NCBI GenBank assembly: GCA_004431415.1
Contig: QPMI01000089.1
Coordinates: forward strand, 62,001 to 126,000
Reading direction: 5' to 3'
Source of the DNA: Cyanophora paradoxa CCMP329
Taxonomy: Eukaryota; Plantae; Glaucophyta
DNA length: 64,000 nucleotides
In this document: positions 29,501-53,035 of the stretch, in pieces
How positions within the stretch are numbered: position 1 is the first letter of the stretch
How the letters are laid out: every line of letters begins with the position of its first letter
The notes under the pieces: model-generated
Database searches by the model: none
The model's input: only the letters and a program-made list of their open reading frames with translations
What the model was told of the DNA's origin: nothing
Position numbers and translations under genes: made by a program

Positions 29501-30721
29501 GGCGCCATCGCCATCAACGGGCCCCCGCAGCGCCGCCGCGTCAGCCTCGCCACGGGCCTCGCGCCGGCCCCGCCGCCCGCCCGCCCGCCGAGATCGGACT
29601 CGCGGGCGAGGGCCTCCGCCCGCCCTCCCCGGCCTCGGCGCCTCGTCGCCCCTCAGCCCGCGCGCCCGCCGCCTCTCCTCCGCCTCCTCCTCCTCCCCGC
29701 CGCACTCGGCCGGCCAGCTCGCCCCGCACCCGCCCTCGGACACGAGCCCGAGGGCGCCCTCGCCCTCCCCGCGGCGCCCGCTCGCAGCGGGGCTCGCGGG
29801 GCAGTCGACGCCCCTCGCCCCGCGCCGCCCCTCCGCCTCCCAGAGCCCCGAGCCGGGCGGCCGCCGCGCCCCCGGCCCGCCCTCGGCGCCCCCGGCGCTC
29901 CGCGCCCCACGCCACGCCGCTCCTCGGTCGCCTCTGCCCCAGGGACGCCCGCCACGCCCCCGGCGCCCTCGCCGCCCCCGGCGCCCACGCCCCCGGAATC
30001 CATCCGCGTCTCGGCCCCAGCGGAGGAGGAACCGGAGCCGCCCCCGCCGCCGAAGCCGCGGGTGTCGCGGGAGGAGCGGCGGGCGTCCATCGCGGCGGCG
30101 CTGGCCAAGCTCGAGGCGGCGGCGGGGGATTTCGAGGGGGCCCTGCGGGAGGTGCGCGGGGCGGAGCCCGTTCTCGTGCCCCTCGCCCCCGTCTTCCCCT
30201 ACGCCCCCTCCCGCGACGGCGACGCCGACGAGGAGGAGGAGGACGGCGGCGAGGGCGCCTCGCCCCCCGTGGAGCCGGAACCGGAGGCCGCGGCGGAAGC
30301 AGAGAAGGAGGCGGCGGCGGAGGCGGAGGAAGGCTCCGAACGGGAAAAGGAGCCGGCGACGCCGGAGCCTGCCGCGGCGGCCGAGGCGCCGCGCGCCGCG
30401 GCGCCGGCCCCGACGAAGCCGCCGCCGGCCGCGCCGGCAGCAGCAGCGGCGGCGATGGCGACGGTCCTGGAGGAGGGCGACGAGGAGGCCGCCGCGCCCG
30501 CGCCCGCCCCCGCCACGCCCGCCCAGCCGCGGCCCAACGTGGAGAAGGAGAAGGAGAAGGAGAAGCAGGGGGCGGCGGGCCCGAAGGGCGAGGAGGAGGT
30601 CAAGGCCGAGGAGGCGGAGGGAAAGGCGGGGGAAGAAGCGGGGGAGGGGGAGGAGGGGGAGGAGGAGCACCGGCCGCTGCACGCCTTCGGCGGGCACGAC
30701 CTCCTCTCTGCCATTGGCTAG
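25545..30721 (+). CDS. Large EF-hand-like protein with long Pro/Ala/Glu-rich C-terminal exon, multi-exon
   Basis: FWSAADTDASGTLSFEEY (EF-hand loop), AREDFESDRRGKDYVDKYRFFMSIFQAADLWTENVNEYEY. Strong GC3 codon bias. Final exon ~28571-30721. Start uncertain. Confidence 0.75.
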
Positions 30722-30990
30722 CCGGGCCACGCCCCTTGCTCCTTGCGTCATGTATGCGAGGGGGGATACAGCCGCTATCTGTGTGCAAGAGTGCCCTCCT
30801 CCCTGCCCCCGTCCCCCTTACCCCCGACCAACCTTCCCGGATGCCCTGAGCCCGGCGGCTCCACCAGGCTTGCTCTCGGACGAGCGAGCCCCCGACCCGA
30901 CCCGCCGTGCCGACGACACGGCGGGCCGTACTCTAGCGTGTACAGAGAGGTTTAGATTATAGACAAGTCGACGGCAGAAAAAAAAAAACG

Positions 30991-33900
30991 ATGTACCCAG
31001 GCCATCGCGAAGGCCTGCGCGTACGGGAAACTGGCGATGCTAGCGCATCGTCCAGCAGCATAAACAGCCTCCCGGCACCAAACGGAGCTGGAGGACACCG
31101 CCCGAGCACACCGGAGCCGAAAACAAGGCTCGCGACGCAACGCCAACAACAAGATGCAATCCAAGCGGCGTCGCAGCTCGGCGGTGCAGAGGGAGTCGAA
31201 CGATGTGGCGCCGCGCTCACTCTCGAGCCGAGCGACCACCAAGAAGCCAACGCCGCCCGCGACGGAACTCGAGCCGGGCGGCGACCGACCGAACAAGCTC
31301 CTTCTGCTTGCAGAAGCCCCCGTGCGATGCGCCCTTGCGAAGGGACATCACCCCGCCTCGCGCGTCGTTCGCGCCACCCGCCCGGGCCTCACGCCCGCCC
31401 CGCAGTTCTCAAATCACCACTCTTTCACTGCGTGGCGGGCGCGGGCGGCCGACGTTCGAACGACGTGCCCCCCGCGTTCGCTGCCGACGCTAAAGGCATG
31501 CCTCGCTCTGGCCGATGTCATGGGGCCTTACACCGTCGTCGTGCGGTTTGGCTATCCATGAATAAGCCCCCCCTCAATCCACACAGGAGCCGATGTAACG
31601 GGGCCTTACACCGTCGTCGTACGGTTTGGCTATCCGTCCGGTCTCCCCCGCTGCGCCGATGCCACGGGGCCACACGCCGTCGTCGAGCGGCCCGGCTCTC
31701 CGAGGATAGGCAACCCGCGCGTCGATCCCCCGGGGCCGCAAGGCTCACCGGGGTAAGATGCCCCCCTGCTGTTCGCTCCCCGCCGCGCGCGCGCGCCCGC
31801 CCGCCCGCCCGCCGCCCGCCTCTCCACCTCGACCCTCTCATGCCACACCTTCCTCGCAGGAAACTGGGTCTTCGGCATGGTGTCTCCACTCTTGGTCTGT
31901 TTTCTTTTCTTTTCCTCGCCCTCCTCCCGCCGGCGGCCAGCCTCGCTCCGGTCCTCGGGCCCCTAGCTGAACCCACCACCTGGGCTTCCCCTCCCTCCGT
32001 CTGCGCCTCTGAGATCCTCGGGCTCCTATCTAGTCCCAGCTGGATTGCCGTGGGGATACTCACGGCACTTAGCCTGTCCATGGGAATCGGCGTCCGGGGC
32101 TATGTCCGACGACGCCGGCGCCTAGACGATGTCGCCGGGCTCGCTCCCCGCGAAGTCGAACCCGGACCCCCGGGCCTCCGCCGGGGCCCCCGATCGCCGC
32201 GCCTACTCCGCCCCCCTCGCCGCCCCGCCCCGCTGCTAGGCCCCGCTCTCTGCCGCCGTCGCCGGCCCTGGCGGCCCCTGCCGAGGTCCACCCGCCGGCG
32301 CCTTCGCCGCTCCCGCCCCCGCTCTTGCCCTATCCCCTGCCCGGCCCGCGTCGGTGCAACTCCTTGGCTCCCGCGCTCGCCCTTCTCCCCCTATCAGAGC
32401 CGACCCTCGCCTCGCCGGCCCCGGGCCTCGCGGAAGAGTCATCCGCGTCGCCTCCGTCGTTTCTTCAGCTCCCCCGCCCCCCCACCCCTACCGGCTGAGC
32501 TGCAGGTTCCTGCTGCGACGCCCTCCCGCCCCGACCTCCCCCTACCTGGCCTCCGTCCTGCACAGTCCAATCGTGTACGCCCCCGTACCCTGCGCCCGCT
32601 GACGCCCCTGCCCGCGCGTCCTTCCTTCTCGACGGCGCGGGCACGTCGCAACGTTGCAGCCGCTCTTGCCCTCCGGAACAGCTGGCCCTCTTTACCCCCC
32701 CCAGCAGCTGTGAGGACGCGCCCGATGGCTCCGCAGGCCAGCTCCCTCGCCAGCTCTCCTGCCCCGCCCCGGGGTGTCCGCCTCACGGTCCGATTCGCGC
32801 TCTCGTCTGGCCGCTCCCTTCTTCGACCCCGCCCGCCCCTCCTCGCCCGGCGCCTCAAGGGCCACGCCACCCGCCGCCGCCCAGCCCGAGAGCCCCGCCC
32901 CCAGCCCGCCCCTGAGCCGCGCCGACGCCCGTCAACGGCAGTCCCTGACCCCCCTTCCTCCTGTACGGCCCCCATTTCCCCCCTTCATGCCTTCCTGCAC
33001 GGCTCGTGCCCCCCCCTGCCCCATATCACAACCCCCGAGCTCCTCGCCCTCTCCGCCCTCTCTCTCCTTTTTCTTCTTTCCTTTCTCCTCGCCCTCTCGT
33101 TACTCCCTTTCTCACTTCTCCTCCAGTTACCCCCCCGCCTCTCAGAGTACCCCCCCCTGCATCCCTTGATTGCCCGGCTCTTACATAGAACTCTCCTTTC
33201 CCCCCTTGGACCCCCTCAGCAGTGTCCTTCGCGGAGTCGCCTCCTCTCTCGGCCCCCCCTGACCCACCCCCTCTCCCCTTGTGGACTACCCCTAGGGCAC
33301 CGCCCCCTCTCCCCGCCTCTCCCGCCTCTTTCTTCCCCCCTTCTATCAGGCCCCCGTCTTATCTTCAGCTCTCCCCCGCCTTCCTCGCCCTCCCCTCGCT
33401 GCTTCTCCTCCTGCTGTCTGCTCGCTTCCTTCGCCACCTTGTTTTTCCCGATCCCGCTCCCAGCGCCCACCGTCCCCTCCTCATTCGCGCCCGCCGGCAA
33501 GCCCAGCATGCGCGACGAGCCCGCGGGCGTCGATGTGGAGGCCCTTACCGCGGGGCCCCCTCCTTATCCTCTCCCTTCACTGTCTCCTTGCCCTCCCTCC
33601 CTTACAACTGCCCCTCACCTTATCGACGCCCTCCGCTTCGTTATTGCAGCGGTTCCCGTATCCCCACTATGGTTCATTGATCCCTCGTACCCGGCCCCCT
33701 CGACCAGCCCTCCCCCCGCCCCTCCTCTTAGGACACCCGAGCAACTGCTCCCCCCCTCCCACCCTTCTCCCTCCCCCCGCCCCCGCCTCCTCCTACCCCT
33801 CTGCCCCTCCCCCCGCCAGCTGCCGGGATCCTTCTGCTCGCACTCCTCTCCCGGCGCCGCCGGCGGTTTCTTGACTCGTCCGGCCCTGCTCTTCTTCAAC

Positions 33901-36900
33901 TCCTTACCTGCCCTGTCCCTCCCCCCGACCTCCCCTCGCCCTCCCCCGGCCTTGTCCCCTTTGGCACGCCGCCGGGCAGCGTTTGCTTGGACCCGCCTCG
34001 CCGACTTTGCTCTCCTTCTCGCACCCCGTCTCCTTGAATTTTCTATTATTTTCCCGGCCTTCCTAGCGGCCGAATGGCATGTGCTTTCCTGTGCACTATG
34101 GCAGCTCGGGGCTGATCTCCTGCATGCACTCTATGTCTCAGATGACCCGGGCCTGGCCCCGGCTGTGCTGGCTGCACCGTTTACCCTGCCTTTCCTCCTT
34201 CTTCTAGGCCATCCTCCAGAACCCCTAGAATTTATTTCGATAGTGACCGTTTCTGCTTTAGCAGGCCACGCCCTACAAACTGCTCTAGACACTATATCCC
34301 CCCGTGGCCCCTTAAAGAAAGCCCCGTACCCACACTACTCCCCCAAGCTCCTCACCATCATCGCCGCCCTCTTGTGGCACATTCAACCTGCTGCTGCGAA
34401 TCCCGTCCTGCACCTTCCCCTCATCCCCCTTCTACCCATGGCCAGTCCCCTTCTCATTGCTCTTGGAGCTATCGCTGCCCTCCTTGCTTGCGGCCGCACG
34501 CAAATGCGGGGGCCCTCGAGCATGACCACTCCGACGTCTACTGGTTGGATCGACGGACAGGGTCTAACCACCTGCCGGGGCCCCAGCTGCATCACGCCTC
34601 GCATGCCACATGTGCCGCCGGGCCCCAACCCCCCGCGCGCCTTGCCTCCCACTGCGCCATGCGACCTGCAGGACGTCGTCGGCCCTCCCACCGCCCCGCG
34701 CTGCGCCCGTGCTAACGGACCCGGACCTGAGATGAGGCCGCCGCCGAGCCCCCGCGCGCCGCCCGCCTCGCCCCAGCTCGCGCCGCTAGACCTGCGGGAC
34801 GCTGTCGGCCCCCCTGCTGCCCCGCGCTGCGCCCGAACTGACGGACCTGGGCCGGAAGTGAAGCCGCCGCCGTGCCCCAGCGCGCCGCCCGCCTCGCCCC
34901 AGCTTGCGCCGCTAGACCTGCGGGACGCTGTCGGCCCTCCCGCCGCCCCGCGCTGCGCCCGAGCTGACGGACCTGGCCGGAAGTGACGCCGCCACCGAGC
35001 CCCCGCGCGCCGCCGCCTCGCCCCAGCTCGCGCCGCTAGACCTGCGGGACGCTGTCGACCCCCCTGCTGCCCGCGCTGCGCCCGAGCTGACGGACCTGGG
35101 CCGGAAGTGACGCCGCCACCGAGCCCTCGCGCACCGCCCGCCTCGCCCCAGCTCGCGCCGCTAGACCTGCGGGACGCTGTCGGCCTCACCGCCGCCCCGC
35201 GCTGCGCCCGTGCTGACGGACCTGGGCCGGAAGTGAAGCCGCCGCCGCGCCCTCGCGCGCCGCCCGCCTCGCCCCAGCTCGCGCCGCTAGACCTGCGGGA
35301 CGCTATCGGCCCTCCCGCCGCCCCGCGCTGCGCCCGAGCTGACGGACCTGGGCCGGAAGTGACGCCGCCACCGAGCCCCCGCGCGCCGCCCGCCTCGCCC
35401 CAGCTCGCGCCGCTAGACCTGCGGGACGATGTCGGCCCTCCCGCCGCCCCGCGCTGCGCCCGTGCTGACGGACCTGGGCCGGAAGTGAAGCCGCCGCCGC
35501 GCCCCGCGCGCCGCCCGCCTCGCCCCAGCTCGCGCCGCTAGACCTGCGGGACGCTATCGGCCCTCCCGCCGCCCCGCGCTGCGCCCGAGCTGACGGACCT
35601 GGGCCGGAAGTGAAGCCGTCGCCGTGCCCCCGTGCGCCACCCGCCTCGCCCCAGCTCGCGCCGCTAGACCTGCGGGACGCTGTCGGCCCTCCCGCCGCCC
35701 CGCGCTGCGCCCGAGCTGACGGACCTGGGCCGTGCCCCCGTGCGCCACCCGCCTCGCCCCAGCTCGCGCCGCTAGACCTGCGGGACGCTGTCGGCCCCCC
35801 CGCCGCCCCGCGCTGCGCCCGAGCTGACGGACCTGGGCCGGAAGTGAAGCCGCCGCCGAGCCCCCGCGCGCCGCCCGCCTCGCCCCAGCTCGCGCCGCTA
35901 GACCTGCGGGACGCTATCGGCCCTCCCGCCGCCCCGCGCTGCGCCCGAGCTGACGGACCTGGGCCGGAAGTGACGCCGCCACCGAGCCCCCGCGCGCCGC
36001 CCGCCTCGCCCCAGCTCGCGCCGCTAGACCTGCGGGACGATGTCGGCCCCTCCGCCGCCCCGCGCTGCGCCCGAGCTGACGGACCTGGGCCGGAAGTGAA
36101 GCCGCCGCCGTGCCCCAGCGCGCCGCCCGCCTCGCCCCAGCTCGCGCCGCTAGACCTGCGAGACGCTGTCGGCCCTCCCGCCGCCCCGCGCTGCGCCCGA
36201 GCTGACGGACCTGGGCCGGAAGTGAAGCCGTCGCCGAGCCCCCGCGCGCCGCCCGCCTCGCCCCAGCTCGCGCCGCTAGACCTGCGGGACGCTGTCGGCC
36301 CCCCTGCTGCCCCGCGCTGCGCCCGAGCTGACGGACCTGGGCCGGAAGTGACGCCGCCACCGAGCCCCCGCGCACCGCCCGCCTCGCCCCAGCTCGCGCC
36401 GCTAGACCTGCGGGACGCTGTCGGCCTCACCGCCGCCCCGCGCTGCGCCCGATTTGACGGGCCTGGACCTGAAGACAAGCCGCCGCCGAGCCCTCGCTCG
36501 CCGCCCGCCTCGCCCCAGCTCGCGCCGCTAGACCTGCCGGACGCTGTCGGCCTCACTGCCGCCCCGCGCTGCGCCCGATTTGACGGGCCTGGACCTGAAG
36601 ACAAGCCGCCGCCGGGCCCCGCGCGCCGCCCGCCTCGCCCCAGCTCGCGCCGCTAGATCTGCGGGACGCTGTCGGCCCCCTGCTGCCCGCGCTGCGCCCG
36701 AGCTGACGGACCTGGGCCGGAAGTGAAGCCGCCGCCGTGCCCCAGCGCGCCGCCCGCCTCGCCCCAGCTCGCGCCGCTAGACCTGCGGGACGCTGTCGGC
36801 CCTCCCGCCGCCCCGCGCTGCGCCCGAGCTGACGGACCTGGGCCGGAAGTGACGCCGCCACCGAGCCCCCGCGCGCCACCCGCCTCGCCCCAGCTCGCGC

Positions 36901-37742
36901 CGCTAGACCTGCGGGACGATGTCGGCCCCCCCGCCGCCCCGCGCTGCGCCCGAGCTGACGGACCTGGGCCGGAAGTGAAGCCGCCGCCGAGCCCCCGTGC
37001 GCCACCCGCCTCGCCCCAGCTCGCGCCGCTAGACCTGCGGGACGCTGTCGGCCCTCCCGCCGCCCCGCGCTGCGCCCGAGCTGACGGACCTGGGCCGGAA
37101 GTGAAGCCGCCGCCGTGCCCCCGTGCGCCACCCGCCTCGCCCCAGCTCGCGCCGCTAGACCTGCGGGACGCTGTCGACCCCCCTGCTGCCCCGCGCTGCG
37201 CCCGAGCTGACGGACCTGGGCCGGAAGTGACGCCGCCACCGAGCCCTCGCGCACCGCCCGCCTCGCCCCAGCTCGCGCCGCTAGACCTGCGGGACGCTGT
37301 CGGCCTCACCGCCGCCCCGCCCTGCGCCCGATTTGACGGACCTGGGCCGGAAGTGACGCCGCCACCGAGCCCCCGCGCACCGCCCGCCTCGCCCCAGCTC
37401 GCGCCGCTAGACCTGCGGGACGCTGTCGGCCTCACCGCCGCCCGGCGCCGCACCCGCGCTTACGGACCCGGACCCGCAGTGAAGCCGCCGCCGGGCCCCG
37501 CGCGCCGCCCGTCTCGCCTCCGCCCGCGCCGGCACCACGCGACCTGCAAGACACTATCAGCCTTTCCGCCGCCCGGCCCCGCGCCCGTGCTGACGGACCC
37601 GGACCTGACGCGAAGCCGCCGCCGGTCCTCAGCGCGCCGCCCGTCTCGCCTCCGCCCACGCCGCGCGACCTGCAGGACGCTGTCGGCCCGGCGGCTCGGC
37701 GCCGCGCCCGAGTCGACTGTCCGATCCCTAGAGCAAACCTAA
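30991..37742 (+). CDS. Putative ORF1 of the retrotransposon: Pro/Arg-rich, hydrophobic segments, 42-aa repeat array (frameshifted)
   Basis: ATG 28 nt inside the 5' end opens a 1331-codon frame that runs into the repeat array. The same repeat peptide continues in other frames to 37742. No recognisable gag knuckle or RRM. Confidence 0.45.
34620..37700 (+). repeat. 126-bp tandem array, ~24 copies
   Basis: GCCGCTAGACCTGCGGGAC recurs at 126-bp spacing (e.g. 34786, 34912). Unit translates PPPSPRAPPASPQLAPLDLRDAVGPPAAPRCARADGPGPEVK. Confidence 0.95.
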
Positions 37743-38880
37743 GGTTGCAGAAGTGTCCCGGAGGTCCATCTGCGACGCCCCGCCCGTCGAGCGCGTCGCA
37801 AGAGGTCAATCCCAGTCGAGATGCTATTGCCGCTGCCGCGCCACGCCGCGCTGCTCGCCTCGGCATCCAGCAGGCCGCGCAAGTACTTTCACAGCTCAGT
37901 CGCCGTGTCTACATCTGGAGCACCTCCTGGACCACGGTCGCTAGACCGCGCTACGGCATGCTCCAGAACTTGATCGCTGGACTGGAGCACGGAAGCCCCA
38001 TCAGAGCCGTCGCATACTGCAGTAGCCGGTGGAGTTTCCCCTTCCGGTCGGAACGTCTCAGGGCCCGGACGACACTGCGCCTACCGGTACCCCCACCGCG
38101 TGCCGTCAAAAAACCCCAACGCGAACAGGTTTTTTTATTCATGCGATTGATGAGTCGGGCAATGATTCGAAGCGGCCCAATGCCTCCGCAAATTGGACCG
38201 CAATCCGCGAGTGCTTGACTAGCTGCACTATAGCTAGTACGTATACCGTTCCCCCTGCGTACGGCCGCGAGCCGGCGCCTGGCTGTAGCACCGGCACTGC
38301 CATTGCAGGTTACTCAGCTAGCACTGGCGCCCACGCTAGTGCTGGCCCCACCAACGCCGGCGCCTCGAGCTCGGACGCTGCGCTGCATGACGCCGAGAGT
38401 TGTCGTACGAACCACGCGTACGGATCCGGACGCGTACTAGCCATGCGTACGGCCGCGTACCTCGCAGTTAGCCCCGCGCTAGTGCCCACGTGCACGCCGG
38501 CGCTGGCCCCGCCGACGCCGGCGTCACGGACGCTGCGCCGCATGACGCCGGTCTCGAACTCCTGGGCCGGCGCCGGCCTGCGCGCCGCGCCCCACAAACC
38601 CAACGGTCCTTCAGCCGCCCGGCCCCTCTCCTCACACACCTCCTCCTCTGTGTTCTCCTCGCCGCCCTTGTCCCCGTCGCCCTTGCGGACATCGAGCCCA
38701 GCACAGCAACGGCCGCCGCAGTCGCTACCGCCGCCGCCGCCCTCTCCTCTCCGCCACTAGTCACGGCGGCCTCGTCCCTTCTAACATTATACCTCCCTCT
38801 CTGTACACCGCTGACCGTATTGACGCTCGCCACCACCGTGATGCGCTCCAGATCCCTGTCCTAGCACACCCCCGGACGCG

Positions 38881-40896
38881 GCAAATGCGAAGCTGAACCT
38901 CCGCGCCCTCACGTGGAATATTCGCCGCTTGGAGGGGAAGGCGAGCGGCAACAATATTGCAACTAAATTTATCAGCGCAATTGACTATGGCCGCCGTGAC
39001 TGGGACTGCCACTTCGTTGCTCTTCAAGAGGTCGACATGGTCCCTACCGACCGCCCCCCCTCGAAGCCCTTTCCGCCCAATATCCGCGATCACCTGATTA
39101 AGACAGCAGTCCGCCGCCATAAATCTAGCTACCTTGTCTATTCTCCTCCATCCGCGGCCCGCCCTGGCACCGCTGGCTCCGCGCTATGGATCTCAGCAAG
39201 CTATGCAGCGCACCGCCAGGCGGATTATGCGTTTGACGGCCGAGTAGCCGGCGCCCGATTTGACTTCCCGCGCACGCGCGAGCGCCTCATTGTCCTCTCA
39301 CTCTACGTGCCGGACTGCGGGCACGACAATTTGCAAAAAGAGCTCCACGACCTCACCGAATACCTGACCGCGAAGGTCGCACCCGACATCCACGAACCTG
39401 ACTGGCAGACGCATCTCCTGGTACTCGGCGATATGAATAGCACCTACTCTCCGTGCAACGACCGGATCACCGGGGGCAACCGGCGCACTGAAACTACCCC
39501 CCCGAACTCCTACGCAGAAATATGGACCCTTTTCCGCGAGACCTGGGGTCTTTATGATACCGGAACCCCGGGCGATTTCACACATGTTTCCCGCCACGCC
39601 GACTTTCTTGACGATCAGGGCCACCGCCCCCTCCTGGACGCCGCCCGCATCGACTACGCCCTTGCCTCCCCCACTCTCGCGGCCCGATCACTAGGGACTC
39701 GCACGCTTTATGTCCCTGGCCGACCGTCCCCTTTACTCACAGCCGACCATCTCCCCGTACTTGCGACCTTCAAAACCGAAGGCGTGCTCTCTGCCCCCCC
39801 TACGGAGCCCCGCCAGCCCCGACCCCAGCCTCTCCCTCCTCTCTTCAACTATGCCGCCCAACCTGCACCCATCCGGCTTGCTTTCAAGCTCGCTGTCGAA
39901 ACTTTTCTCAATAAACACGGCCAGCGGTATATCCAGCTCCTTCTCACTCCCGAGAGCAGCCCCGACTACGCCCAACGCGCCACGAAATCCCACCGCTCCC
40001 TCCTCTGTGCTATCGCCCAAAGTATCAAGTCCGTCGCCCACTCCCAAGAATTCTCTACTGCTAAAGTCCTCCAACACCGCGTAGCTGCCCAGGGAGATAT
40101 GGCTAAGTTCAACCATCTATCTGCACTGGACGCTGACGACGAACAACTCGTTGGCCGCGTTGGACAGGCCTTACACGACTGGGCGCACCAAGGCTCCACA
40201 GACCACCCGCCTGACGAAACTATCCGGGCCGTCCTCCGGGACCTTCCCAAAGACGTGACGGACATCCGAAAAGCTGCGGGCTCGGACACCACACTGACAT
40301 TCTGCCCCTCCCTCCTCGCTTTCCCCGACCCTCCCAATTACCCTGAATTCGAGAATGGTACCATTACAGGCTCTGAAATCGCCGAGTACCATACTCAACT
40401 AAGTACATGGCACTTACAGGCGCGGGCCGCCCTGGACAATCATCGCCGTGCATATACCGAAGCCGACATTGCTCGCAATATTGACACCCGCCGCCACCTC
40501 CTGTCCCACTGTCGAAGTATGGGTCGGGCTATTCAACTCCTCCTCTCCCGCTTCCGATCCGCCCCCCGCCTATACCTTACCCGCACGGCAGCGGGGCTAC
40601 CCGAAGTGCTCACTGATCCCAATGAAATTAAACGCGCACATCTGGATCACTTCAAAAATTTCTGGCGACTCCGCAAGGCTGCCCCAAACCTGGATGCCAT
40701 AGCTACGAAATTCGCGGACATTGAAAACGGCGCCTGGTTGGGCAGATTTTGGAAACGCCAGTACCGACCCCTTTCCCACTTCACCCCCGCCGTCTGGGAC
40801 GGACTAATGGCCATGCCAGAGGACCCCGAACTCGATCGCCTCATCTCGTCCCTGTCCAATGGTGCAGGCGGTCCTCCGGCCTCACGAACGGAATGA
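38881..40896 (+). CDS. Retrotransposon ORF2 part 1: apurinic-like endonuclease (APE) and linker
   Basis: LTWNIR, LQEVD, SLYVP, LGDMNS, ARIDY, TADHLPV. Frameshift at ~40870 joins it to the RT frame (GAGG/SSGLTNGMIK). Confidence 0.92.
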   Translation, partial: ANAKLNLRALTWNIRRLEGKASGNNIATKFISAIDYGRRDWDCHFVALQEVDMVPTDRPPSKPFPPNIRDHLIKTAVRRHKSSYLVYSPPSAARPGTAGSALWISASYAAHRQADYAFDGRVAGARFDFPRTRERLIVLSLYVPDCGHDNLQKELHDLTEYLTAKVAPDIHEPDWQTHLLVLGDMNSTYSPCNDRITGGNRRTETTPPNSYAEIWTLFRETWGLYDTGTPGDFTHVSRHADFLDDQGHRPLLDAARIDYALASPTLAARSLGTRTLYVPGRPSPLLTADHLPVLATFKTEGVLSAPPTEPRQPRPQPLPPLFNYAAQPAPIRLAFKLAVETFLNKHGQRYIQLLLTPESSPDYAQRATKSHRSLLCAIAQSIKSVAHSQEFSTAKVLQHRVAAQGDMAKFNHLSALDADDEQLVGRVGQALHDWAHQGSTDHPPDETIRAVLRDLPKDVTDIRKAAGSDTTLTFCPSLLAFPDPPNYPEFENGTITGSEIAEYHTQLSTWHLQARAALDNHRRAYTEADIARNIDTRRHLLSHCRSMGRAIQLLLSRFRSAPRLYLTRTAAGLPEVLTDPNEIKRAHLDHFKNFWRLRKAAPNLDAIATKFADIENGAWLGRFWKRQYRPLSHFTPAVWDGLMAMPEDPELDRLISSLSNGAGGPPASRTE

Positions 40897-43800
40897 TTAA
40901 AATGCTCTGGTCCCCCCTCCGCCTCTCCAAGACGGAACGCCAGGCCTTAGCCGCCTCACACTCTACCGACGAGATAAACAGCTTCGAGTCCGCGGCTCAC
41001 TGGACCACCTCGCGCGACGCCATCCGAGCTCTAGTTCAATCCACTCTTCTCGGCCACGTGCCCGACCACGCACTTCGCGGTCAAGTCTACGCTATCCCGA
41101 AACGTGATAATTCAGCAGATCTTGCCGATCTCCGCCCCATCACCCTTCAAGAAGTCACCTGGAAGCTGGTCACGGGCCTCCTGACCCACCGCATGGAAGA
41201 CCGCATTGATACACATAACATACTACGCGGCCGCAACTATGGTTTTTGTCGCCGCGAATCTACCGACCCTGTTCTCTACGCCCTCCGATCCTCCCTCGAG
41301 GACGCGCACCAGTTCAAAAAGCCAATCTTCGGCGGCCTGGGGGATATTGCCAGCGCCTACGACAGTGTCTCCTGGCATAGCCAAGAGCTCAGCCTTAATC
41401 GTATCCAACTCCACCTCCATCCTGAAGGAAAACGCTATATAGCCCTCCACAAAAAAGCAGCTCAACACCGCACGGCGTGCATCCTTACCCCCCACGGCCG
41501 CACGGACTATTTTCAAGTCCCCTGTGGCCTCCCCCAAGGAGGCATCGAAGCCCCTCTCCACTGGCGCATTTTCTTCGACGCCGCTCTCACCGCCATAGAA
41601 GAACGAGCGACTCAGTCCAATTTCGGCTACCAGCTCGGGCCGCACCGATCTGACCCTACCCGCCCCCGTTCCCCCCGCCCACCATGTCCTGGCGAACCCC
41701 TCTACTTCCCCGCCGGTCCCTGCCCCACAGTCTCTGTGCTCGCATACGCCGATGACACCACCATGCTTGCCAGCTCGGCTCAGGGTCTCCAACATATGCT
41801 TGACTGGTTGTCCGAATTTCTCCATATCCATGGCATGAACCTGAACGCCAAAAAGACGGAAATTTTCCACTGGAAACCCCCCCGATCCGAAGCGCCAGTC
41901 AAGAGCAAATACTATGTCGGCGTCGGCGATTCCAGAGCTGAGGTTGGCCACATCCTCTCCCCCACAACACCATTCCGCGTCCTCGGCGTCCAGTTTACTG
42001 CGACCCTGTCTTGGACCCACCAAGTCCGTCTACTCAAGTCCCAGCTCCAGTCCGCAATCTCCGTCTTAGCCACAAAGAAGATTACCGTCCACGAATTCCA
42101 AGTGATACTACATCGGGTTCTCTTCCCCAAACTGGCATACCCTCTCCGCATCATGACCTTAACGCCATCCCAATGCCAATCCCTCGACGCTGTCTGGCTC
42201 ACCGCGGCCAAACACACGGCCAACCTGGCCCAGTCCGTTTCCACGGCTGCCTTCTCTTCCATCTATCGCCTTCCCTCAATAGCTGTCATCCAACGCCAAC
42301 AGCAGTGCGTCGACGAGCGCCTCCGCCAGGAACTAGCCTCTCACACATCATCACTCTACGGCCAAATATACCGACAACGTGTCCTCGACACCCAGGCCCG
42401 ATACGGGCTTCCCCTTCTCCCACACGAATATCCGAACCTCCCCTCGGGGCCCCTCACACTACAGAAAAATATTACGCTTGCCATCACGGCAGACCTGACC
42501 TCCACCTCCCATCACATCCTCACAACGTGCGACTCCTGGACACATGGCCTCCCCTCCCGCCGCTCCCATCTTCGACGAGAATATATTATATCAACGCAAT
42601 TGTCGCCCCTCACCCTCCAACAAGCCGGTCAGCGACTCTATCGCTGCGGCCTCCTCACAATCCGCGACATCACGGCCCCTGACGGCTCCCTTGCCGAATG
42701 GTCCCTCCTCTGGAGTCACGGCCGTGTCCCGGCATACTACAAACGTGCCCCCTCCTGGTGGGACGCTGTCCGCGAAGAACTCTCTCTTCCCCGCCCCTCC
42801 ACCCGGTCCCCTTTCCTCCCCCGCCACCCTATGCCTCCGCCGCCCTCTATCCCAGACATTCGTCGCTCTCTCCAAGCTAATGCCGTCCTTGCAGGACTCA
42901 ACATTGGTGACTTTGTCTGGACATCCCAAGGCCTGGTCGGCCGCGTCGTGGGGAAACCCCCTATCCCAGACGAAAACCCGGACGAACTAGCTTCGGAGGA
43001 CTCCGATGCGGATCCTAACTGCCCCCGAGATTCAGAGTATAACTATGGGGTGGAACTCGTCCATTACTGCCTCACCCCATATGATGGCTTCTCCATGCGC
43101 GACCCCGGTCTATCGGCGCTTGAGCTCGACCCCGCCTGGCGTGAACGCAGACTGGAATTCCAATTTTGCCCTCACCCAAAATACTGCGGCTCTGAACAGC
43201 TTCATCGCGAGCTGGGCCTCTCTACGACTGCTTGTCGATGGGTCGAGTACGCATCTCACGTCCGCCGAATCCCGGCAGGCTCGTCGTGCGAATCGAAGGG
43301 CTGGTCTCCGAGCCTCTCCAATCTCAATAGGCCGGTGCCCACCCGCTCCCGGCAGCTGCCCGACTCCACCTCCGCCTTCACATGCTCCCACTCTAGAGGA
43401 CAGCAGCCCTCCCGTGCTCAACCCACACGAGCAGCTAAAAAAGCCCGCCTTGACCCCTCCTCAGCTACCCCTCCTGCTCAATATGACCCCGAACTCCCCC
43501 CTCCCAACCTCCCCCGCGAAATCACACACATTGGCTTCATCGACCTCTGGCTCCGGGAAACTGACTGGTGGGACTCTTTCCGAGCGGAGGCCCAGGCTAC
43601 CAATGTTGCCCTCGAGAGACGCCCACGCCTTATGACCCCCGCATCACAAGCCGACCGCGACTTCTATGAATCCCCGGCCGGGCTCGACTTCCTTTTCATT
43701 ACCTCCCGAGCCCTTTTCGCAGAGCTCTGCCCTACACTCCGCGCACTAAACTCCCCGCCCCTTCCCTCCGGACCTACTCCCCGGGTAATATACACGGACG

Positions 43801-45190
43801 CCAGCACACAAAAACAGGGCTCCGCCTCCGTCCGAACCACTTACGCCGGCCTTGCACCCCTCGAAAATAATCCCGACCTGCCTGACAAAATCGAGTTCGC
43901 CCACCGTCTCCCCGGCGTCCAACACAACGTGAACCTGGGAGAGCTAGCAGGCACAATCTCCGCAGCATTCACGTATTTCGGGCCCACGGGCGGGAAAATT
44001 ATCACGGACAGTCAGAACACTATCCGAGCCCTGACAGCCTTCGCCTTTCAAGACCCTTCATCTTTCTCCCATCCCATCAACTTCCGCACCCTGCTCCGCC
44101 GAGAAGACGGGGCCCTCCTCCTCAACGCTCGAACGCAATACGCCATTCGTATCGCCCAAGACCCGAACTTCCAAGTCACGCTTCAGTGGGTCCCCTCTCA
44201 CCAACCAAAGACCATCCCGCGGCCACCTGCAACGGCTCCAACACCAACGACGACCCGCCGCCCGGCCCCCTCTTCCCCCCGCCGACCCCGTGTCCCCCTC
44301 AGCGGACCAGCTGCCCCCCTACCTACCGCCCCGCAGACGTTCTCTGCCTCGGCTCCCTACCACTATATTGGCGGAATGGACATCCCCGATGCCCGACTCC
44401 TTTTTTCGGACGACTCCTCCCCACCCCTCCCCCCGTCCCTATTCTCGTCCCTCTTCCCGCCTCGCCGGCACATTCGCACATATATTCTAGCTGACAGCCC
44501 CGCCGACTACCATTTCCTCCGATGCCAAGCGGACCTCGTTGACTATGTAGACGCCTCTGAGACTACCAACACCCACCTGGTCCTCGACCTCGTCCCCCTC
44601 GCGTCCGCCAGACTTGAACGCGCCTTCACGGCGGCGGAAACCGTCATCTGGAACCGCTGCATCCGACTTCCCAAGGATCATGCTCTCTTCCCCTCCGACG
44701 AACACCTGACCATTGTCTCGGACTGCGACATCCTCCGCGCCTACTCCGCTTTCCTTGAAGCCTTAGGACGCAGAGACATCACTCACAGCATCTCCTTCCA
44801 GTGCTGCTCCCCTCCCAACCCAATCTTCCTTCAACCACTCCCCGAGGACGCCCCTGATGTTGACTACCCTGATCCCGGGCCTACAAGGAAACTCGCCCTC
44901 GACTATTACTTAGCCCATCCTAGGGGTTCCGGCCCCACCTGGCATTTCTACCCCACTTCCCTCTGCAAACCCGCTGTCCCCGCCGACCGTGACACGCCTT
45001 TCCCCGCCTGGTACTGGGACGAGGATCTTACACTCGCCCCCACCTCCCAGACCGAGGCTGGCACCCCTCTGGTCGCGTACCACCGTTGCGACCCTGGCAT
45101 GTGGGGCGTTCCTATTTCCTCCCTGATCGCAGAACAATGGGCACGGGGACCCGCCCTGTCCTGCCCGCACTGCCACCCACCCCCCCCCCC
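40870..45190 (+). CDS. Retrotransposon ORF2 part 2: reverse transcriptase, N-terminal part of RNase H, unknown inserted domain
   Basis: LRPITLQE, NYGF, DIASAYDSV, GLPQGG, LAYADDT, RVLGV. RNase H YTDAS (~43790), GELAG, TDSQN, WVPSH (44187-44201). Confidence 0.95.
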
Positions 45191-47300
45191 CCTGGCCCCC
45201 ACCCACGTTCCCTTTCCGCGACCAAACCGGCGCCCTTCCTGTTTTATTCGAACGCTATGGACGCCGAGCCATCCCCTACTCAGCTGCCATCGACCCTGAC
45301 GGCCCCAGGTATGATCGCCGAGTACTTCCCCTCCTCGACGGCATAAAATCTCGCCTGGCTGCCCTTAAAGCGGCCCCCCTCTCCCTCATCGACCCCAACC
45401 CCCGGTCTGGGGCCCACCTGGCCACACCCGTTCTCCTCGCACAACCCATACCTGCAGAACCCGTCGACGCTTTCTTCAGACTTCTCCAAAACCGACAAGT
45501 CTCCTTCCGCCTTCATGCCCCGACCACCCCCAAGTGCCTCTTCCTCTCGTCCTCCCACGCAACCTCGATCCTCATGGGCACAGCCCCCACTGCCCTCTCT
45601 CTCAAAGCCCGCGCAGGCCAGCCACACCTGGACCGACCCTACGTCCCGCACCCTTTCTCCCCAACGGAATACGATTATATTCTCCTCCCCCTGCCCCCCT
45701 CTGGGTCCCGACCCTGGCGACTAGCAATCATCTCGGCCCGCCTCCGCGAAATCCGCATCCTGGACGTCACCCGCAAACCCGCCTCCGACGTCACGGCCCC
45801 TCTTAAAGACTGGGTCATCAGCTGGTGGACGGCGACTCTCCGCCCCGGCGACCCCTCCCCACGCTCGGCCTGGAAGTACGACACCAGCACCTTCCCCACA
45901 CAAGCCTGGAAAAACGTCCACACGGGTGAAGACGCTCTCTTCGTCATGACTGCTGCTGAGTTCATTGGCCGCGGTGAGGAAGTCCACCTGTATGGCAAAG
46001 GACGGGGCCGCCCTATCCCCTTCCACGCCCCCATCTACCGGGAGCGTTGGGCGGCCGCTCTCCTTCTCCGGGACCCTGAGGTTCTCCTGGGGACAGTCCA
46101 GGCTAACGACCCGGCATTCACAACAAAACGACAGCGCATGACCCCGCGCACCAGCTCCCGCCCCTCCCAGCACACGGCAGCCAAAGCCCGCCGTCCGGTC
46201 AGACGCAAGCGAGACCCCACCCCTCCTCCCTTCCGTCCTCCCCTCTCCCCCCCGTCCCTTACACCGGTAACCCCCCGGTCCCCCAATTCCCCTCCCTCCT
46301 CCCCGCAGCCCCCCACCCCCCCCCACCCTGCCCTTCCCCACCCCCACGCCCCCGGCGCCCGAGGCCCGACCAACTACTTCCCCAGGCCGAACCCCCGCTC
46401 ACCCGACTGAATTTCCCCTCCCTCGCCCCCTGACGCTGGCGGAGAAAAGTTGGCTGGGAATGCCTTCCGGTTTGCAGACAATGATTACTGCGCGGAGCAA
46501 ACTCTCATGTCGAAACCCCCCTCCCACCCGCCCCCCGACATGACCCTCATCGCCACTCCCTCATTCGACGAGGCGACCTTATCCACCTCCGGCCGCATGC
46601 CGCCCTCAGCCTCCCCCTTGTGGAAGCCTTCCTTGACATGCTCTCCTCCCGTGAAGCCGCCCTGGCCTCGCCTCACCCTGCCTACTTCCTGTCGTCCAGC
46701 TCCTATCCCGCTAGTGCAGCCTCCCAATTTGACTCTCGGGGCTCTGCCCTTCTCCCCCTGCACCAATACCTTCCCCCCGGACGCCTTCTCGATGCCCGCC
46801 TTGTCCTTGTCCCCATCCTTACCTATCGCCCCACTCATCATACCCCACCAGCCCCCTCGCCGACCCTTCCCTCAGGCAGATCCCGGCACCCTCAGGGCCC
46901 CCCGGGACACTGGCACCTACTCGCTTTATTTCCTCAGACGCGCTCGTTCTACATTCACAACGGCTCCCTCGACGTCCCTGATCACCTTGTCTCCTTTGCA
47001 CAAGACTTGGCCGCCACTTGGAGTCACCGCGACTCTGGTTCCCCCCTCCCCCTCACTCCATTCTGCAGATGGACCTATTTACGCCCGGAGACATCCCTCT
47101 CCGTTCTCCAGCCCCCCAACAGCACGGCCTGCGGCCCTCTCCTCCTCCTCACAGCTGACCTACTCAGTCGCTCCTCAGCACTTGCCCCGTCGGACTTGCC
47201 CCGCCCCCCAGCCTACATTCAGATCGACAATGCAACGCTCCGCAGATACCGTGAATATATTGCCCTCAGCCTCTGCTACGGGTCCGTCACCCTTGACCCT
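45190..47300 (+). CDS. Retrotransposon ORF2 part 3: two tandem Ulp1/C48-like peptidase domains (first degenerate, second with catalytic residues)
   Basis: Domain 1: VDAFFRLL..KCLFLSS..YDYILLPL..PWRLAII..IRILD..PTQ..EDALFVMTAAE. Domain 2: VEAFLDML..AYFLSS..LVLVPI..GHWHLLAL..IHNGS..QPPNSTACG. Confidence 0.7.
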
Positions 47301-47769
47301 ATATGCTGTGGTCCTGCCCTCCCGGCCCTCAGACCCCCACCGACCTTCCCGGGGCGTCCCCACCCGCCACGCCGCCCCCCGGTCTCCACTGGCGGCACCC
47401 TGCCTACCCTAGACTCCCCACCATCCTCCCCCGACCACCCAGCCCTCCCGCGCTCCCCAACTGTGCTTGAGTCTACCCCGCCTCGCCCTGCAGGGCCCGC
47501 CACCCCCCTCCCTCCCGGTGCTCGCTACGCCCAAGAACTCGCCTCTCAGCTCGCTGACCTGGCCCGCAACGAAGCTTCCGCAACAGCACGCCGTCTCTTC
47601 CGGCCGTCCCACGTGACCCCACTCGAGGCGGCGACCATCCTAGCTGAAGCCGCTCACCGCGACGCCGCCCAGCCGCCACCACGGTCCGCCAAAACATCTA
47701 AAACGGTCGCAAAGAAAGAGGCGGCCCGGACCCCGGCCAAGAACCGTATCCCGAACCCAGCATATACTC

Positions 47770-50267
47770 CTGACAACTGCCACAATGACGCCGTTGACAA
47801 GCTTGCCAAAACGACCCCAGACGCCCCCCTCTCAGCCCTTCTCTTCATTCCCCACAGTTTCAAATGCTTCCTCATCCGCGTCGGCCTCCCGCCCCCGTCA
47901 TCCCAAGGCCCAGTTCCAGGAGCCGAGCCCTACAGAGGCAGACTCCATGCATACCGCGTTGAGGGGGACCCCCGCTCTCACTTCCTAGCCGAAGCCTCCC
48001 TCTCCAATACCTCGACTGGCGCCAGCTTCGCAACGCGGGGGCCGTCCTCAGCAATCCTCACGTTACCCTCGCCCCAGCCCTCTCCCTCGTGTCCGACAAG
48101 CCACCGGACCGCCGTACCCCCACAGGCGATCACCTCCGCAAAGTCAGATTCCAATGCATTCTTGGAGGCCTCCCCTCCCTCACCATCCGCCTCCTCCACG
48201 ACCCCGACCTATACGGCCCTCTCTTTCCTGACGGTATCGCCCACTGCCCCTTCTGTCACCTCCCTCCCACCCCTGCCCCAGTCCCCGAGGACCCTGCTTC
48301 CCCACCCCCACCCTCCCCGCCCCCTGCCACGTTCACCCCCCCGGGCTCCCCCCCGCCCTCTTCCCCACCGAGGGCCGCAGACCCCAGACAGCCCGACCCC
48401 ACAACCCACCCCCCCGAAGACTTCATTCACATATTTACTTGCCCCGCCGCTCGCCTCCTCCTCCAAGCTCTCCAGGACGCACTCGTGACCTTCCTCCGCA
48501 CCCGGGTTCTCCGCCACTCGCCCAAACCCTTAGGACACGACGATACTATTTTTCAACTCTTTCCCTTCCTCCGCCTCGTCTCCCCTGACCCCGCCTCTCC
48601 CCTCCAATCCGCCCTCCTCTCCCCCACTGAAAATCCGGCCCTTTTCCGCCCCCCAGGTCTCACCGATACCCTATGGACAAAGCTTAGCCCGGCCTTGGCT
48701 GACCTGCTCCCCTTCCCCGCCCCTGCCCTCCTGCGCCTCGGTACCCCGGCAGGATTGCCCGCCCTCTGCACAGCCCTGGGCATTAACAAGACCACCACAA
48801 TGTCAATCCAAAAAGATTTAGCGCTACTCCTCGACCAACACCTCCGTGCGATCTGGAGGGACCGCTGCGCCCGCAACCACGCCTGGGAGCTCCGACAAGG
48901 CATCACTGACAGAACCAAACGTCGATACCGCAAACATGCCGACACCAAACCCTCCCGCTCGCCGCCAGTACAGCCGCCTGGTCCCCCCCTCCCCCCCCGC
49001 CCCCCCCGCCCCCTCCCTCCATGATACTATCTCCATCACTGACTTCTGCTGCGGATTGGACTCGGAAAGCCAACCATGGGTTCTCCTGGAAAATTTCCGC
49101 CAGGCAATTGCACGACTCCCTGCCTCCCCCTCGCCCCAGACCGCCCCCTCCCCCCAGGCCCCCCCCTCCCCCCAGCCGCCCAATACCAGCACCGTAGCCA
49201 TGACATCTGACTTCTCTTGTACCTGTGGCACCCGATTTGCCTCCGCAGCTGCCCTCCAGGCCCACTCCGACGCCAGACGGGGAAAGTGCCCCGCTCGCCC
49301 TGAGACCACCTCATACTCTAGATCTGCCTCCCAACCTGCTGCACCCCCAACGCAACCTTCTCACAAGAACCCCGACAATGGCACCCTGCCCGCTTTGCTC
49401 ACGGGCCCTACGTCCGCTACTCAACCTTCCAAGCGCCCCGCCCTAACGCCCCCCCTGGCCCCTCCCTCGAAACGAACTCGCCCGTCGCCTGCCTCACGCA
49501 AACGGACAACCGATACTCCCCCCGCCCCGGCACCCAAACGCCCGCGCCCCATGACCCCTCCCCTTCCCGCCTCTTCACCCGCCCCACCCGTACCTACGGC
49601 GAAAAGAAAGGCAGCCGGTCGCAAGACCCCCAAGCGCGGAACCAAAAAAGCGCGAACGGTGTCGATACCCGCTGGACAACTCACAATCACGTCCCTCTTC
49701 GCACCTGGAGTGTACAAACCACTAACGACGCTTCCAGTAGCCGACTCTCCCCCCCCCTCCTCGCTTCAGCCGGCCCCCCCGACCGAGACCCCGCACGAGG
49801 CCGCCCCGCCGCCCCCTACGGTCCCTCCCCCGGCCCCAACCGACTCACAAGTGTCGAACCCCTCGTTGACTCCGGCCACCCCCATGGCTTCGGCCCCCCC
49901 ACTGGCTTCGGCCCCCCCCTCGGCTTCGGCCACCCCATCGGCTTCGGCCCCCCCCCCGGCTTCGGCCACCCCATCGGCCTCGGCCACCCCTCTGGCCTCG
50001 GCCACCCCCCCTACTCAGACCGACCCCTCCCGACCCCTCGCGACCCGCCTCGTCTCCGCACTCCCCGCTCTCTGCGCCGCCTGTCAGTGCCCACGCTCAC
50101 TCCACTCTGCCGTCCCGGCACCGCTCCCTGCCCTGCCCCGCATCCGCTGCCCACCCCCTCCCGCTGCCGCCGCCCACTCCCTCTCCTTCCTCATATCTTC
50201 CTCCTACCACCTTCTTCACCTCGACAGAACGGGACACCGATTAATCGGGGTCCTGGGGCGCAGGTGA
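47770..50267 (+). CDS. Retrotransposon ORF2 part 4: RNase H C-terminal helix, CCHC finger, extra Zn fingers, NLS-like and PIP-box-like motifs
   Basis: HNDAVDKLAK (~47780-47810), CPFCH...EDFIHIFTCP, IWRDRCARNHAWE, CTCGTRFASAAALQAH..C, KRKAAGRKTPKR, QLTITSLF, CAACQCPRSLH. Frameshifts at ~48000-48090 and ~49010. Confidence 0.8.
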
Positions 50268-52047
50268 GGAGGAGGGAGGAGGCAGAGTGAGGAGGAGGAG
50301 GGGTGGCGGAGCGGCGGCAAGGGAGGGCGGCGGACTGCGAGACATTTCACTTCCAGGGCTCATGAGGGATGGAGGAGTTGATCAAGGGGTGGGCGCGCGG
50401 GCCTGGTTACGGCTATCACCGAAAACCATGGCTCCCCCACTCAGGCGAACCTCCCATATTGAGCGACCCATGGCCGGCACCTTGCTAGCGTCTTCGGCTA
50501 GACAGATGACCGGTCGGAAGGGCACGTCACGTAGAACATTGATACATGTGCCGTGGTGTATCAATGCGACGTCCACTTTTGCAAAAAAAAAGAGAGGTTT
50601 AGATTATAGTGCGCCTTCTCGGAGGCCCTAGCTTACTAGGCATAGCGCTAGCTACAGCTGCAGCTCACTTCGCTGCCCACCTCTGGTTTCTATTCTCGTC
50701 CCTGGGTAGTCACTCCCTTTCCCGCGTAGGATCTTTCCTGTGCTGCAGCTCTAGACTTAGTCCCCGGGGTAGCATCGCCAGTTACTTCCACATCCGAGCT
50801 CCACCCGGTCCGATGTCCGAAAGGCTTAGTCCCGTAGGCTCATCTCTCGACTTGACACAGATGGACACCTCAGTTACATCTCTAGCCATTTGTCTCGGTG
50901 TGTGCGAATTCATTTATAGGCTATCTGTGTGCAAGAGGGGGGGTACAGATGCAAGCAGCAAGCGAAATCCCCAATAGTCAGCTGGCTGTAAAACTAAGAG
51001 CTCGAGCAGCTCGAAAGCGAGCAGAACTCGAAAAGAATACTCTGCAGCAGAAAGCGAGTGAGTTCCAATCGCTGAAAGGAAGGTTTGTGTGCCGTCACGG
51101 CGTGATGTGCCGCGCAGTGCATATGCATGTGCATTGAACTTTAAACTTGAAGCTTAAGCTTTGTACGTACGACCGAATGGCAGGCCTGGGCAGCACGTAT
51201 TCCGAAAAGTTCATTTCGTACCGGCGGCACGTACTAGTACTCCCGCGGCGCGCAGCTGCAGCGGGGCCGAGCGGGGCCGAGCCTCGGAGTTCTAGCTATA
51301 GCCGCTGCCGCACGCGAGAGCTATGAGGCCCTTAGGGAGAGCGAACTTCGGAAGCTAGCGGGGAGAGCGGGTGAAGTCGCGGAGATCTAGCTATAGAGGC
51401 CGCCGGTTGCGAGCGACAACCAAGTGATTCACGTGTGGGCGCCGGGCGAGCGAGCTGCTGCGAGAGCTGCACTTGCAGATTCCGGTGCTACGCTCTGGAG
51501 CACGGATCCGCAGCGAGACAGCCCCCCGAGATGCACGGATCCGAAGCGAGCATGCGCACCGACGTGGCTGATCATGACGGGCGCGGCAGGGTCGCGGAAG
51601 AATGCCCCGCGCGCAGCATGGCCATGGCCGCGCAAAAGGCAGGTGTTGATCCGAATGCGTACCCCCCTAGATCCCACCTTCTCGATTTGACCCGACTCGG
51701 CCGCTCTTCAAATACTAGATGGCAGCCTCCCCATCGCGAGGATGACTGCAAGTAACACGGCGTGGCTGTGCCGGGGGGTGAGGATGGGCGTTGTAATCGG
51801 GTTCCGGAAGGGTTGTGACAAGCGCGCACACGCCCATCCGCCGCGCTCTTTTGCGGTATGGCTTTGTACGAATGTATACACGCAGTTTTCTTCTACTGGC
51901 CTCAGCCAGCTGCAGCTGCAGCCGCCCGGTCAATATCATGATCATGAGGTGCTTAAGCTTGCAACTGCGCTTCGTGCCTCGAGCTCGAGGCCTAGGTCCA
52001 AAGATAGGAGGCACACAGCCTCGTGCTCGAGCCTTATATAATTATAG

Positions 52048-52737: not shown

Positions 52738-53035
52738 CGCCCCCATTTCACTCGCGATCGCACTGCATCACTGGAAGGCATCTCGCATTTGAAGTCCTCG
52801 CTGTACTTGCGCGAAATCCTCGCTTAGCGGCTGTCCTTGCGCGAAATCCTCGCTTAGCGGCTGTCCTTGCGCGAAATCCTCGCTTAGCGGCTGTCCTTGC
52901 GCGAAATCCTCGCTTAGCGGCTGTCCTTGCGCGGAATCTTTGAATTCAATGGCGGCTGTCCTTCACACGATTATTTGCGCGAAATACGCGAAATTCTCCT
53001 TCTCACGATCTTTGCGCGAGTGAAATGGGGGGGCG
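52738..53035. mobile_element. MITE with ~17-bp TIRs enclosing a 30-bp tandem repeat
   Basis: CCCCCATTTCACTCGCG (52740) / CGCGAGTGAAATGGGGG (53015). Internal GCTGTCCTTGCGCGAAATCCTCGCTTAGCG x~4.5 at 52800-52935. Confidence 0.75.

Follow-up and report, generated by a model that had tools for sequence, protein, structure and literature searches.

How can 19.6 kb of DNA come to lie between two perfect copies of the same 19-bp sequence? The question is raised by a stretch of 64,000 nucleotides from the glaucophyte Cyanophora paradoxa CCMP329 (GenBank assembly GCA_004431415.1, contig QPMI01000089.1, positions 62,001 to 126,000 of the forward strand), here called the window and numbered from its first letter. 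An initial annotation, made from the letters alone, had interpreted positions 30944-50609 as a non-LTR retrotransposon (without long terminal repeats, LTRs) inserted as one unit. The present analysis leads to a similar answer, and we consider it likely that the sequence represents one full-length member of a multi-copy family of long interspersed nuclear elements (LINEs) of C. paradoxa that was active recently and is of the apurinic/apyrimidinic endonuclease (APE) type. This reading draws on a reverse transcriptase (RT), an N-terminal APE, target-site duplications, an A-rich end, a truncated second copy and an empty site, all of which were found, while no terminal repeats of the element at 30963-50590, either LTRs or terminal inverted repeats, were detected when they were looked for.

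Boundaries of the insertion and its empty site

The 19-bp sequence AGAGAGGTTTAGATTATAG occurs exactly twice in the 64-kb window, at 30944 and at 50591. The left copy (30944-30962, forward strand) and the right copy (50591-50609, forward strand) are identical and enclose 30963-50590, an inserted element of 19,628 bp whose sense strand is the forward one and whose interior terminates in ...TTTTGC(A)8. By our own arithmetic, about 0.0075 chance exact 19-mers would be expected anywhere in 64 kb, and the remaining long exact repeats listed for the window consist of poly-C or of low-complexity sequence, or belong to a separate repeat near 100-2100. The perfect target-site duplication around 19,628 bp that the initial annotation had described is therefore borne out by exact copies. 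The interior also differs from its surroundings in composition, with a GC skew of -0.19 to -0.45 over 31-50 kb, reflecting a C-rich sense strand, versus -0.02 to +0.03 just downstream and -0.07 upstream.

Logan contigs from four public runs, including DNA and RNA-type runs, were compared with window positions 29400-34600. One contig of DNA run X2 follows the left flank to 30962 and then continues for 164 nt, the first 30 letters of which equal positions 50610-50639 (30/30), a sequence that is unique within the window. This contig represents the allele without the insertion, in which the 19-mer stands only once, and it provides the empty site that had been named as a check on the one-unit insertion. 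In RNA-type run X19, a contig of 391 nt lies on 30791-30962, and its remaining 212 letters are found nowhere on 29400-34600. Taken together, the perfect duplication and the empty site indicate that the 19.6 kb came in as one unit, and recently, in agreement with both earlier claims. C. paradoxa has been reported as more likely haploid (PMC6704402); given the empty-site contig, the insertion is probably polymorphic among the sequenced cultures.

The insertion had been placed just downstream of a host stop codon. Codon-position GC (0.90-0.99 at third positions) delimits the host open reading frame (ORF) as 28580-30721, so that the element lies about 240 bp into the host 3' untranslated region (UTR). 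The TAG at 30960-30962, inside the duplication, closes a frame other than the host coding frame. The position downstream of the host ORF is thus correct, but this TAG is not the host stop. The last ORF of the host gene (28580-30721) is 713 aa long and has no Pfam domain, and this upstream gene is probably expressed. In the empty allele the host 3' UTR (30722-30962) spans the insertion site; in the filled allele it is broken by 19.6 kb in the same orientation as the gene.

Self-comparison of the window identified a second copy of the family, 5'-truncated and 1,467 bp long, on the reverse strand at 53407-54873 (53389-54891 with its duplications). This copy is flanked by its own exact 18-bp duplication (53389-53406 and 54874-54891), is 88.6% identical to 49142-50590 over 1,450 bp by blastn, and shares with it the same terminal base and the same A8. 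Its tail reading frame is open (ORF 53730-54884). Identity between the two copies reaches ~97-98% in the last ~430 bp, compared with about 85% elsewhere, and this points to a conserved 3' UTR, which in the long element occupies 50268-50590 of the forward strand (~315 nt plus the terminal A8 at 50583-50590). The ninth A, after 50590, belongs to the duplication, and the tail of the element is A8 only. Since TTTTGC(A)8 is common to both copies, it looks like a fixed terminal motif and not a long tail. The earlier description of an end in poly(A) therefore holds for the A-rich terminus and not for a long poly(A). For the last 143 nt of the element, the predicted RNA fold did not reach significance (z=-0.86). 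About five tandem copies of the 30-bp unit GCTGTCCTTGCGCGAAATCCTCGCTTAGCG lie at 52770-52949, between the two LINE copies.

Reading frames and domains of the element

The conceptual ORF2 spans 38875-50267 on the forward strand, corresponds to ~3,800 aa and ends at a stop codon at 50265-50267. As assembled, it is read in pieces at 38875-40875 (phase 0), 40875-45155 (phase 2), 45217-46146 (phase 0), 46575-48041 (phase 2), 47963-48958 (phase 1) and 48822-50267 (phase 2). An exhaustive HMMER search with the RT piece identified P0023, an uninterrupted ORF of 3,720 aa with 50% identity over the RT, encoded at 297-11459 of an 11,942-bp metagenome contig, L001 (ENA ERZ27275054, contig k141_121716). 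In a tblastn comparison, P0023 aligned colinearly with the window across all phase changes, its residue 2 falling at 38875 and its residue 3716 at 50246, and a codon model trained on the P0023 ORF of L001 alone recovers the same ORF2 phases. The intact and colinear P0023 indicates that an ORF2 of ~3,700-3,800 aa exists in a related family. The ~3,800-aa ORF2 proposed by the initial annotation is supported in that sense, for the related family, the window copy itself being in six pieces. The intact ORF2 of L001, which also has the split RNase H and the two Ulp1-like modules described below, shows that this type of giant LINE is not confined to the copy in this genome. The 3' end of L001 has the same layout as that of the window element, with a purine-rich stretch, a hairpin region and a short A-rich end. 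Two scans of metagenome contigs for relatives with longer flanks, by endonuclease and RT alignments, found nothing; a protein homology search with the P0023 RT region returned P0023 itself only, and exact look-up of ORF1 (described below) and of a C. paradoxa gene model, P0024, in assemblies gave no record.

P0024 (EukProt tig00000293_g23868) is 98% identical to the window element and bears on the frame change at 40875, a clean one-base shift that it reads across unbroken. A programmed frameshift or an intron at 40875 was considered and rejected, because the homologs are contiguous, no slippery site is present and P0024 reads through. The change is best explained by a one-base deletion or an assembly error. 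Other frame changes of ORF2 fall at or near C13 (45180-45192), C9 (46316-46324) and C8+C8 (48991-49007). All nine indels listed between the read contigs and the window are bases missing from the window, and a missing base at 29888, in a unique host exon, was seen in all four runs. Extra C's were observed in contigs of DNA and RNA-type runs at 29888, 30899, 33555, 33598, 33735 and 33920 and in array units, in short C runs. Demonstrably, the assembly drops single C/G bases in short homopolymers systematically, and frameshifts in GC-rich genes of this genome therefore need caution. We infer that the reading frames of this copy are more intact than the assembly suggests.

At the N-terminus of ORF2, an APE-type endonuclease is matched at 38908-39714 on the forward strand by Pfam Exo_endo_phos (E=2.1e-6, 28.1 bits, cut-off 24.5), and its motifs TWN, QE, GDxN and DH are conserved with P0023. 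The RT follows at 41094-41996 on the same strand (Pfam RVT_1, E=8.5e-19), with its YADD motif present. When a two-sequence profile of the RT was searched against PDB, proteins of the R2 retrotransposon were the best matches (3e-10), and human L1 ORF2p did not match the profile in PDB at E<=1.

The RNase H domain is apparently split, judging from its motifs in the translations. Its N-terminal part, up to a WVPSH motif, lies at 43785-44204 on the forward strand and matches Pfam RNase_H with E=3e-4 and 21.3 bits, below the cut-off of 25.8, covering profile positions 5-123 of 141. The motifs up to WVPSH are also present in P0023. The C-terminal motif N-D-x-x-D-K-L-A-K, read in translation at 47775-47810 (forward strand) and conserved in P0023, lies ~3.5 kb downstream of the N-terminal part in both the window and P0023. 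The two parts would thus be separated by an insertion of ~1,150 aa (44230-47770, forward strand).

Motifs in the translations indicate that this insertion probably contains two Ulp1-like (C48-like) protease modules. The first, at about 45427-46150, does not have the His. The second, at about 46575-47300, carries GHW...CG motifs that are conserved with P0023, with an Asn in the window where P0023 has the triad Asp. In ESM Atlas, the second module of P0023 (P0023:2590-2830) was placed with Peptidase_C48 clusters (score 0.92, 30/30 matches). An AlphaFold model of module 2, of low confidence (pLDDT, the predicted local distance difference test, 48.6), gave CE-clan proteases as its top Foldseek rows, which were non-significant (E>=0.04). 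Neither module has a Pfam match in the window or in P0023, and PDB sequence searches with pieces of the insertion returned nothing meaningful.

Downstream of the RNase H, a CCHC motif (CPFC ... H-x3-C) with a Pro-rich insert was located at 48245-48442 on the forward strand from the translation and the P0023 alignment, at 47% identity, and a conserved C-terminal block extends after it to about 48958. A profile of the region after the CCHC motif found no R2 restriction-like endonuclease in PDB at E<=10, and no restriction-like (PD-(D/E)xK) endonuclease motif was seen in the translations, a sequence-level test by which a divergent domain could be missed. The ORF2 tail contains a C2H2-like zinc finger at 49212-49265 on the forward strand (Pfam C2H2_ASCIZ_4th, E=0.0018, below the cut-off). 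The same match recurs in the second copy, and by our own reading of the alignment 8/9 differences between the two window copies at 49200-49300 are synonymous in the finger frame. A Pro-rich tail follows the finger, to the stop codon.

Upstream of ORF2, the element begins with a 28-nt 5' leader (30963-30990, forward strand) that contains an A11 run at 30978-30988. The ATG of ORF1 is at 30991, 28 nt from the 5' end of the element. From there to 34662, frame 0 is without stops over 1,224 codons, and the other two forward frames have 22 and 18 stops. In 2,000 first-order Markov simulations, run globally and in local 300-nt blocks, the frames had ~18 stops on average, and even the best frame always had at least 4. 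Zero stops compared with the simulated ~18 suggests that the open frame at 30991-34662 has been maintained, and the frame looks like a very long, low-complexity ORF1. As assembled, ORF1 spans 30991-34986 on the forward strand (1,331 aa, rich in Pro, Leu, Arg, Ala and Ser) and enters a repeat array. Additional C's in the read contigs at 33555, 33598 and 33735 amount to a net +3, and the reading path that includes them is open as well. An ESM Atlas query with the 33.8-34.35 kb piece of ORF1 found no match. At 31511-31701, ORF1 contains three copies of a 47-nt unit with the repeated basic motif C-x-G-A-L-H-R-R-R-x-V-W-L-S, which might bind nucleic acid.

The tandem array occupies 34663-37689 on the forward strand and comprises ~24 units of 126 bp, one of them 108 bp (Tandem Repeats Finder period 126, 24.2 copies, 88% matches). 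Gaps in the alignment of its units are single-base homopolymer gaps only, plus one 18-bp deletion. The consensus unit has only one open forward frame, the same frame in which ORF1 enters. ORF1 may thus continue as 42-aa repeats to a stop at 37740-37742, for a total of ~2,250 aa; alternatively, the array is possibly a non-coding monomer array. Variants among the units comprise 22 synonymous and 39 non-synonymous changes versus 19.6 and 41.4 expected, without a synonymous excess. Treatment of the 5' 8 kb as a non-coding leader had rested on this lack of synonymous excess, on the missing GC periodicity and on the missing Pfam match, and it was dropped for 30991-34662 after the stop-codon test. 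A spacer at 37743-38885 (forward strand), with stops in all three forward frames (7, 5 and 12), separates ORF1 and the array from ORF2.

Single element or composite

The depth of the read contigs bears on whether the 5' 8 kb belongs to the LINE. For read contigs in perfect agreement with 31012-34538, the k-mer depth is 221-453 in run X1 and 233-571 in run X2, compared with 23-102 for unique flank contigs, which suggests roughly 5-10 near-identical copies of the 5' region. RNA-type contigs tile 31099-34600, and the 5' region is probably both multi-copy and transcribed. These data are part of the indirect evidence from which we infer that members of the family normally carry the 5' 8 kb.

Several observations count against the reading as a full-length LINE of a multi-copy family. 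Contig depth allows only a rough estimate of copy number, and GC content is higher in the flank than in the element. No second full-length copy was seen, so that linkage of the 5' 8 kb to the RT elsewhere is without a direct view, and the relative's contig L001 stops 296 bp upstream of ORF2. Neither the filled 5' junction nor the filled 3' junction is among the read-derived contigs listed for 29400-34600. The 5' 8 kb gave no Pfam domain on either strand in any frame, a homolog search with the first 500 aa of ORF1 was negative, and the GC periodicity and codon signal of ORF1 are weak except at 33.8-34.35 kb. A CC at 33920 in the read contigs would end ORF1 at 34064. The assembled ORF2 is broken into its six pieces, and frame 0 contains a stop at 46408.

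Some of these observations would also be expected if the LINE proper comprised only ~38.9-50.6 kb (~11.7 kb) and the 5' 7.9 kb were another repeated, transcribed sequence that had become attached to it in a single event, through 5' transduction or a template switch in the course of reverse transcription, and was co-inserted with it. The unseen linkage between the 5' region and the RT in other copies, the end of the metagenome relative's contig and an ORF1 without homolog or domain all fit such a composite. So do the read contig that begins at 31012 and not at 30963 in two runs, and the A11 run 15 nt inside the 5' end of the element. However, one-off transduced host sequence would be single-copy, and the perfectly matching contigs of the 5' region are ~5-10x deeper than the flank. 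The highly non-random open frame lies on the same strand, and its start 28 nt from the end is where the ORF1 of a LINE would be expected to begin; the C-rich strand bias is common to the 5' region and the body. Furthermore, no poly(A), duplication-like boundary or scar was found at the presumed junction at ~37.7-38.9 kb. On balance we regard a composite as unlikely, and a single full-length LINE as the better account.

That the assembler placed the LINE here or joined two repeats, the true genome having the empty site only, is very improbable: the systematic single-base errors of the window (the nine listed indels), the existence of an empty-site contig and the filled junctions missing from the contigs would suit it, but homopolymer errors differ in kind from a 19.6-kb misplacement, a misjoin would not yield an exact 19-bp target duplication precisely at the 5' end and after the A8, and the neighbouring truncated copy shows the same insertion signature.

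Elsewhere in the window, a sequence of several hundred bp at 97-550 recurs in direct orientation at 1713-2130, about 1.6 kb away, and the two share exact blocks of up to 79 bp; an LTR pair, a solo-LTR duplication or a tandem duplication could account for them. Two poly-C runs were also noted, one of at least 22 bases at 12482 and one of about 35 bases at 26514.

Proposed insertion mechanism and comparison with known elements

In the proposed mechanism, the element would have entered the 3' UTR of an expressed host gene by target-primed reverse transcription. The endonuclease would make staggered nicks 19 bp apart, and the RT would then copy the whole 19.6-kb RNA from the fixed ...TTTTGC(A)8 end to the 5' end. 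The copied RNA would consist, in order, of the 28-nt leader, the long low-complexity ORF1, the ~24 x 126-bp repeats, the 1.1-kb spacer, the ~3,800-aa ORF2 and the ~315-nt 3' UTR. Within ORF2, the predicted order is APE, RT, a split RNase H holding the two Ulp1-like modules, CCHC, the C2H2-like finger and the Pro-rich tail. A more far-reaching interpretation, which we put forward tentatively and hold slightly less probable than its opposite, is that the element is an autonomous and active LINE of nearly 20 kb, whose bracketed insertion may be the longest recorded for any LINE. Such a LINE would have an RT that completes 19.6 kb of target-primed synthesis, and it would encode a repetitive ORF1 of a new kind, of 1,000-2,250 aa, and an ORF2 of ~3,800 aa with protease modules in its RNase H.

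Among the LINE reverse transcriptases that have been studied, most copy 3-7 kb, and the majority of LINE insertions are 5'-truncated. A duplication-bracketed insertion of 19.6 kb with an empty site is natural evidence for very processive target-primed reverse transcription, and it is relevant to the limits on LINE length and to enzymes for writing long DNA from RNA. It also indicates a recently active LINE in C. paradoxa; the genome paper of this species reported "little or no expansion" of repeats (PMC6704402). As a LINE that combines a putative giant ORF1 lacking known domains, an internal array of 3 kb and putative protease modules nested in RNase H, the element also lends itself to testing.

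Other LINE families of the same genome, represented by the EukProt models P0001, P0002, P0087 and others, likewise encode APE and RT, in part with RNase H, but have only 35-44% RT identity to the window element. Three consecutive EukProt models of C. paradoxa, tig00001344_g8370, g8371 and g8372, belong to three related clusters of LINE proteins. The 2019 annotation of this alga appears to divide LINE ORFs among several gene models.

Mouse L1 resembles the window element in having a tandem array of short units in its 5' part, an ORF2 with APE and RT, target-site duplications and 5' truncation. In mouse L1 the monomers are non-coding promoter units located at the very 5' end, and they contribute much less length than the window array does. 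The window array, in contrast, is 3 kb long, lies 3.7 kb inside the element and is possibly part of ORF1.

The NeSL and Utopia non-LTR retrotransposons carry an Ulp1-like cysteine protease domain (PMC4640811), to which the two candidate modules of the window element may correspond. They differ from it in having a restriction-like endonuclease and an N-terminal protease and in being small and target-specific, whereas the window element is of the APE type and its candidate protease modules lie within RNase H.

Among the known elements closest to it are the Dualen/RandI LINEs, especially Dualen-1_GCr, a cryptophyte element with a 5,287-aa ORF comprising SET, C48, APE, RT, RNase H, CCHC and a restriction-like endonuclease (PMC5029228). 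The initial annotation had set typical LINEs of 4-8 kb and Dualen/RandI elements of 10-13 kb as the background, which is incomplete in view of this published ORF; a literature search for the longest or giant LINEs gave nothing usable besides the same paper. Like the window element, Dualen-1_GCr is a LINE of a protist alga with a giant single protein that includes APE, RT and CCHC (PMC5029228); its C48 peptidase and RNase H have candidate counterparts in the window element. The Dualen/RandI group, however, is defined by the combination of APE and a restriction-like endonuclease; the latter was not found in the window element, which at the sequence level does not show the defining combination. 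The C48 domain of Dualen-1_GCr is N-terminal and the C48-like modules of the window element are inside RNase H, and a SET domain, present in Dualen-1_GCr, was not found in the window element. The window element also has ~8 kb upstream of ORF2, and it is a bracketed genomic insertion, whereas Dualen-1_GCr was reconstructed from transcripts. Since giant LINE proteins have been published (Dualen-1_GCr, PMC5029228), a protein of this size class is not new. What sets the window element apart from known elements is its total length, the 5' 8 kb with its putative giant domain-less ORF1 and 3-kb array, the probable protease modules in RNase H, and the direct evidence for a 19.6-kb insertion.

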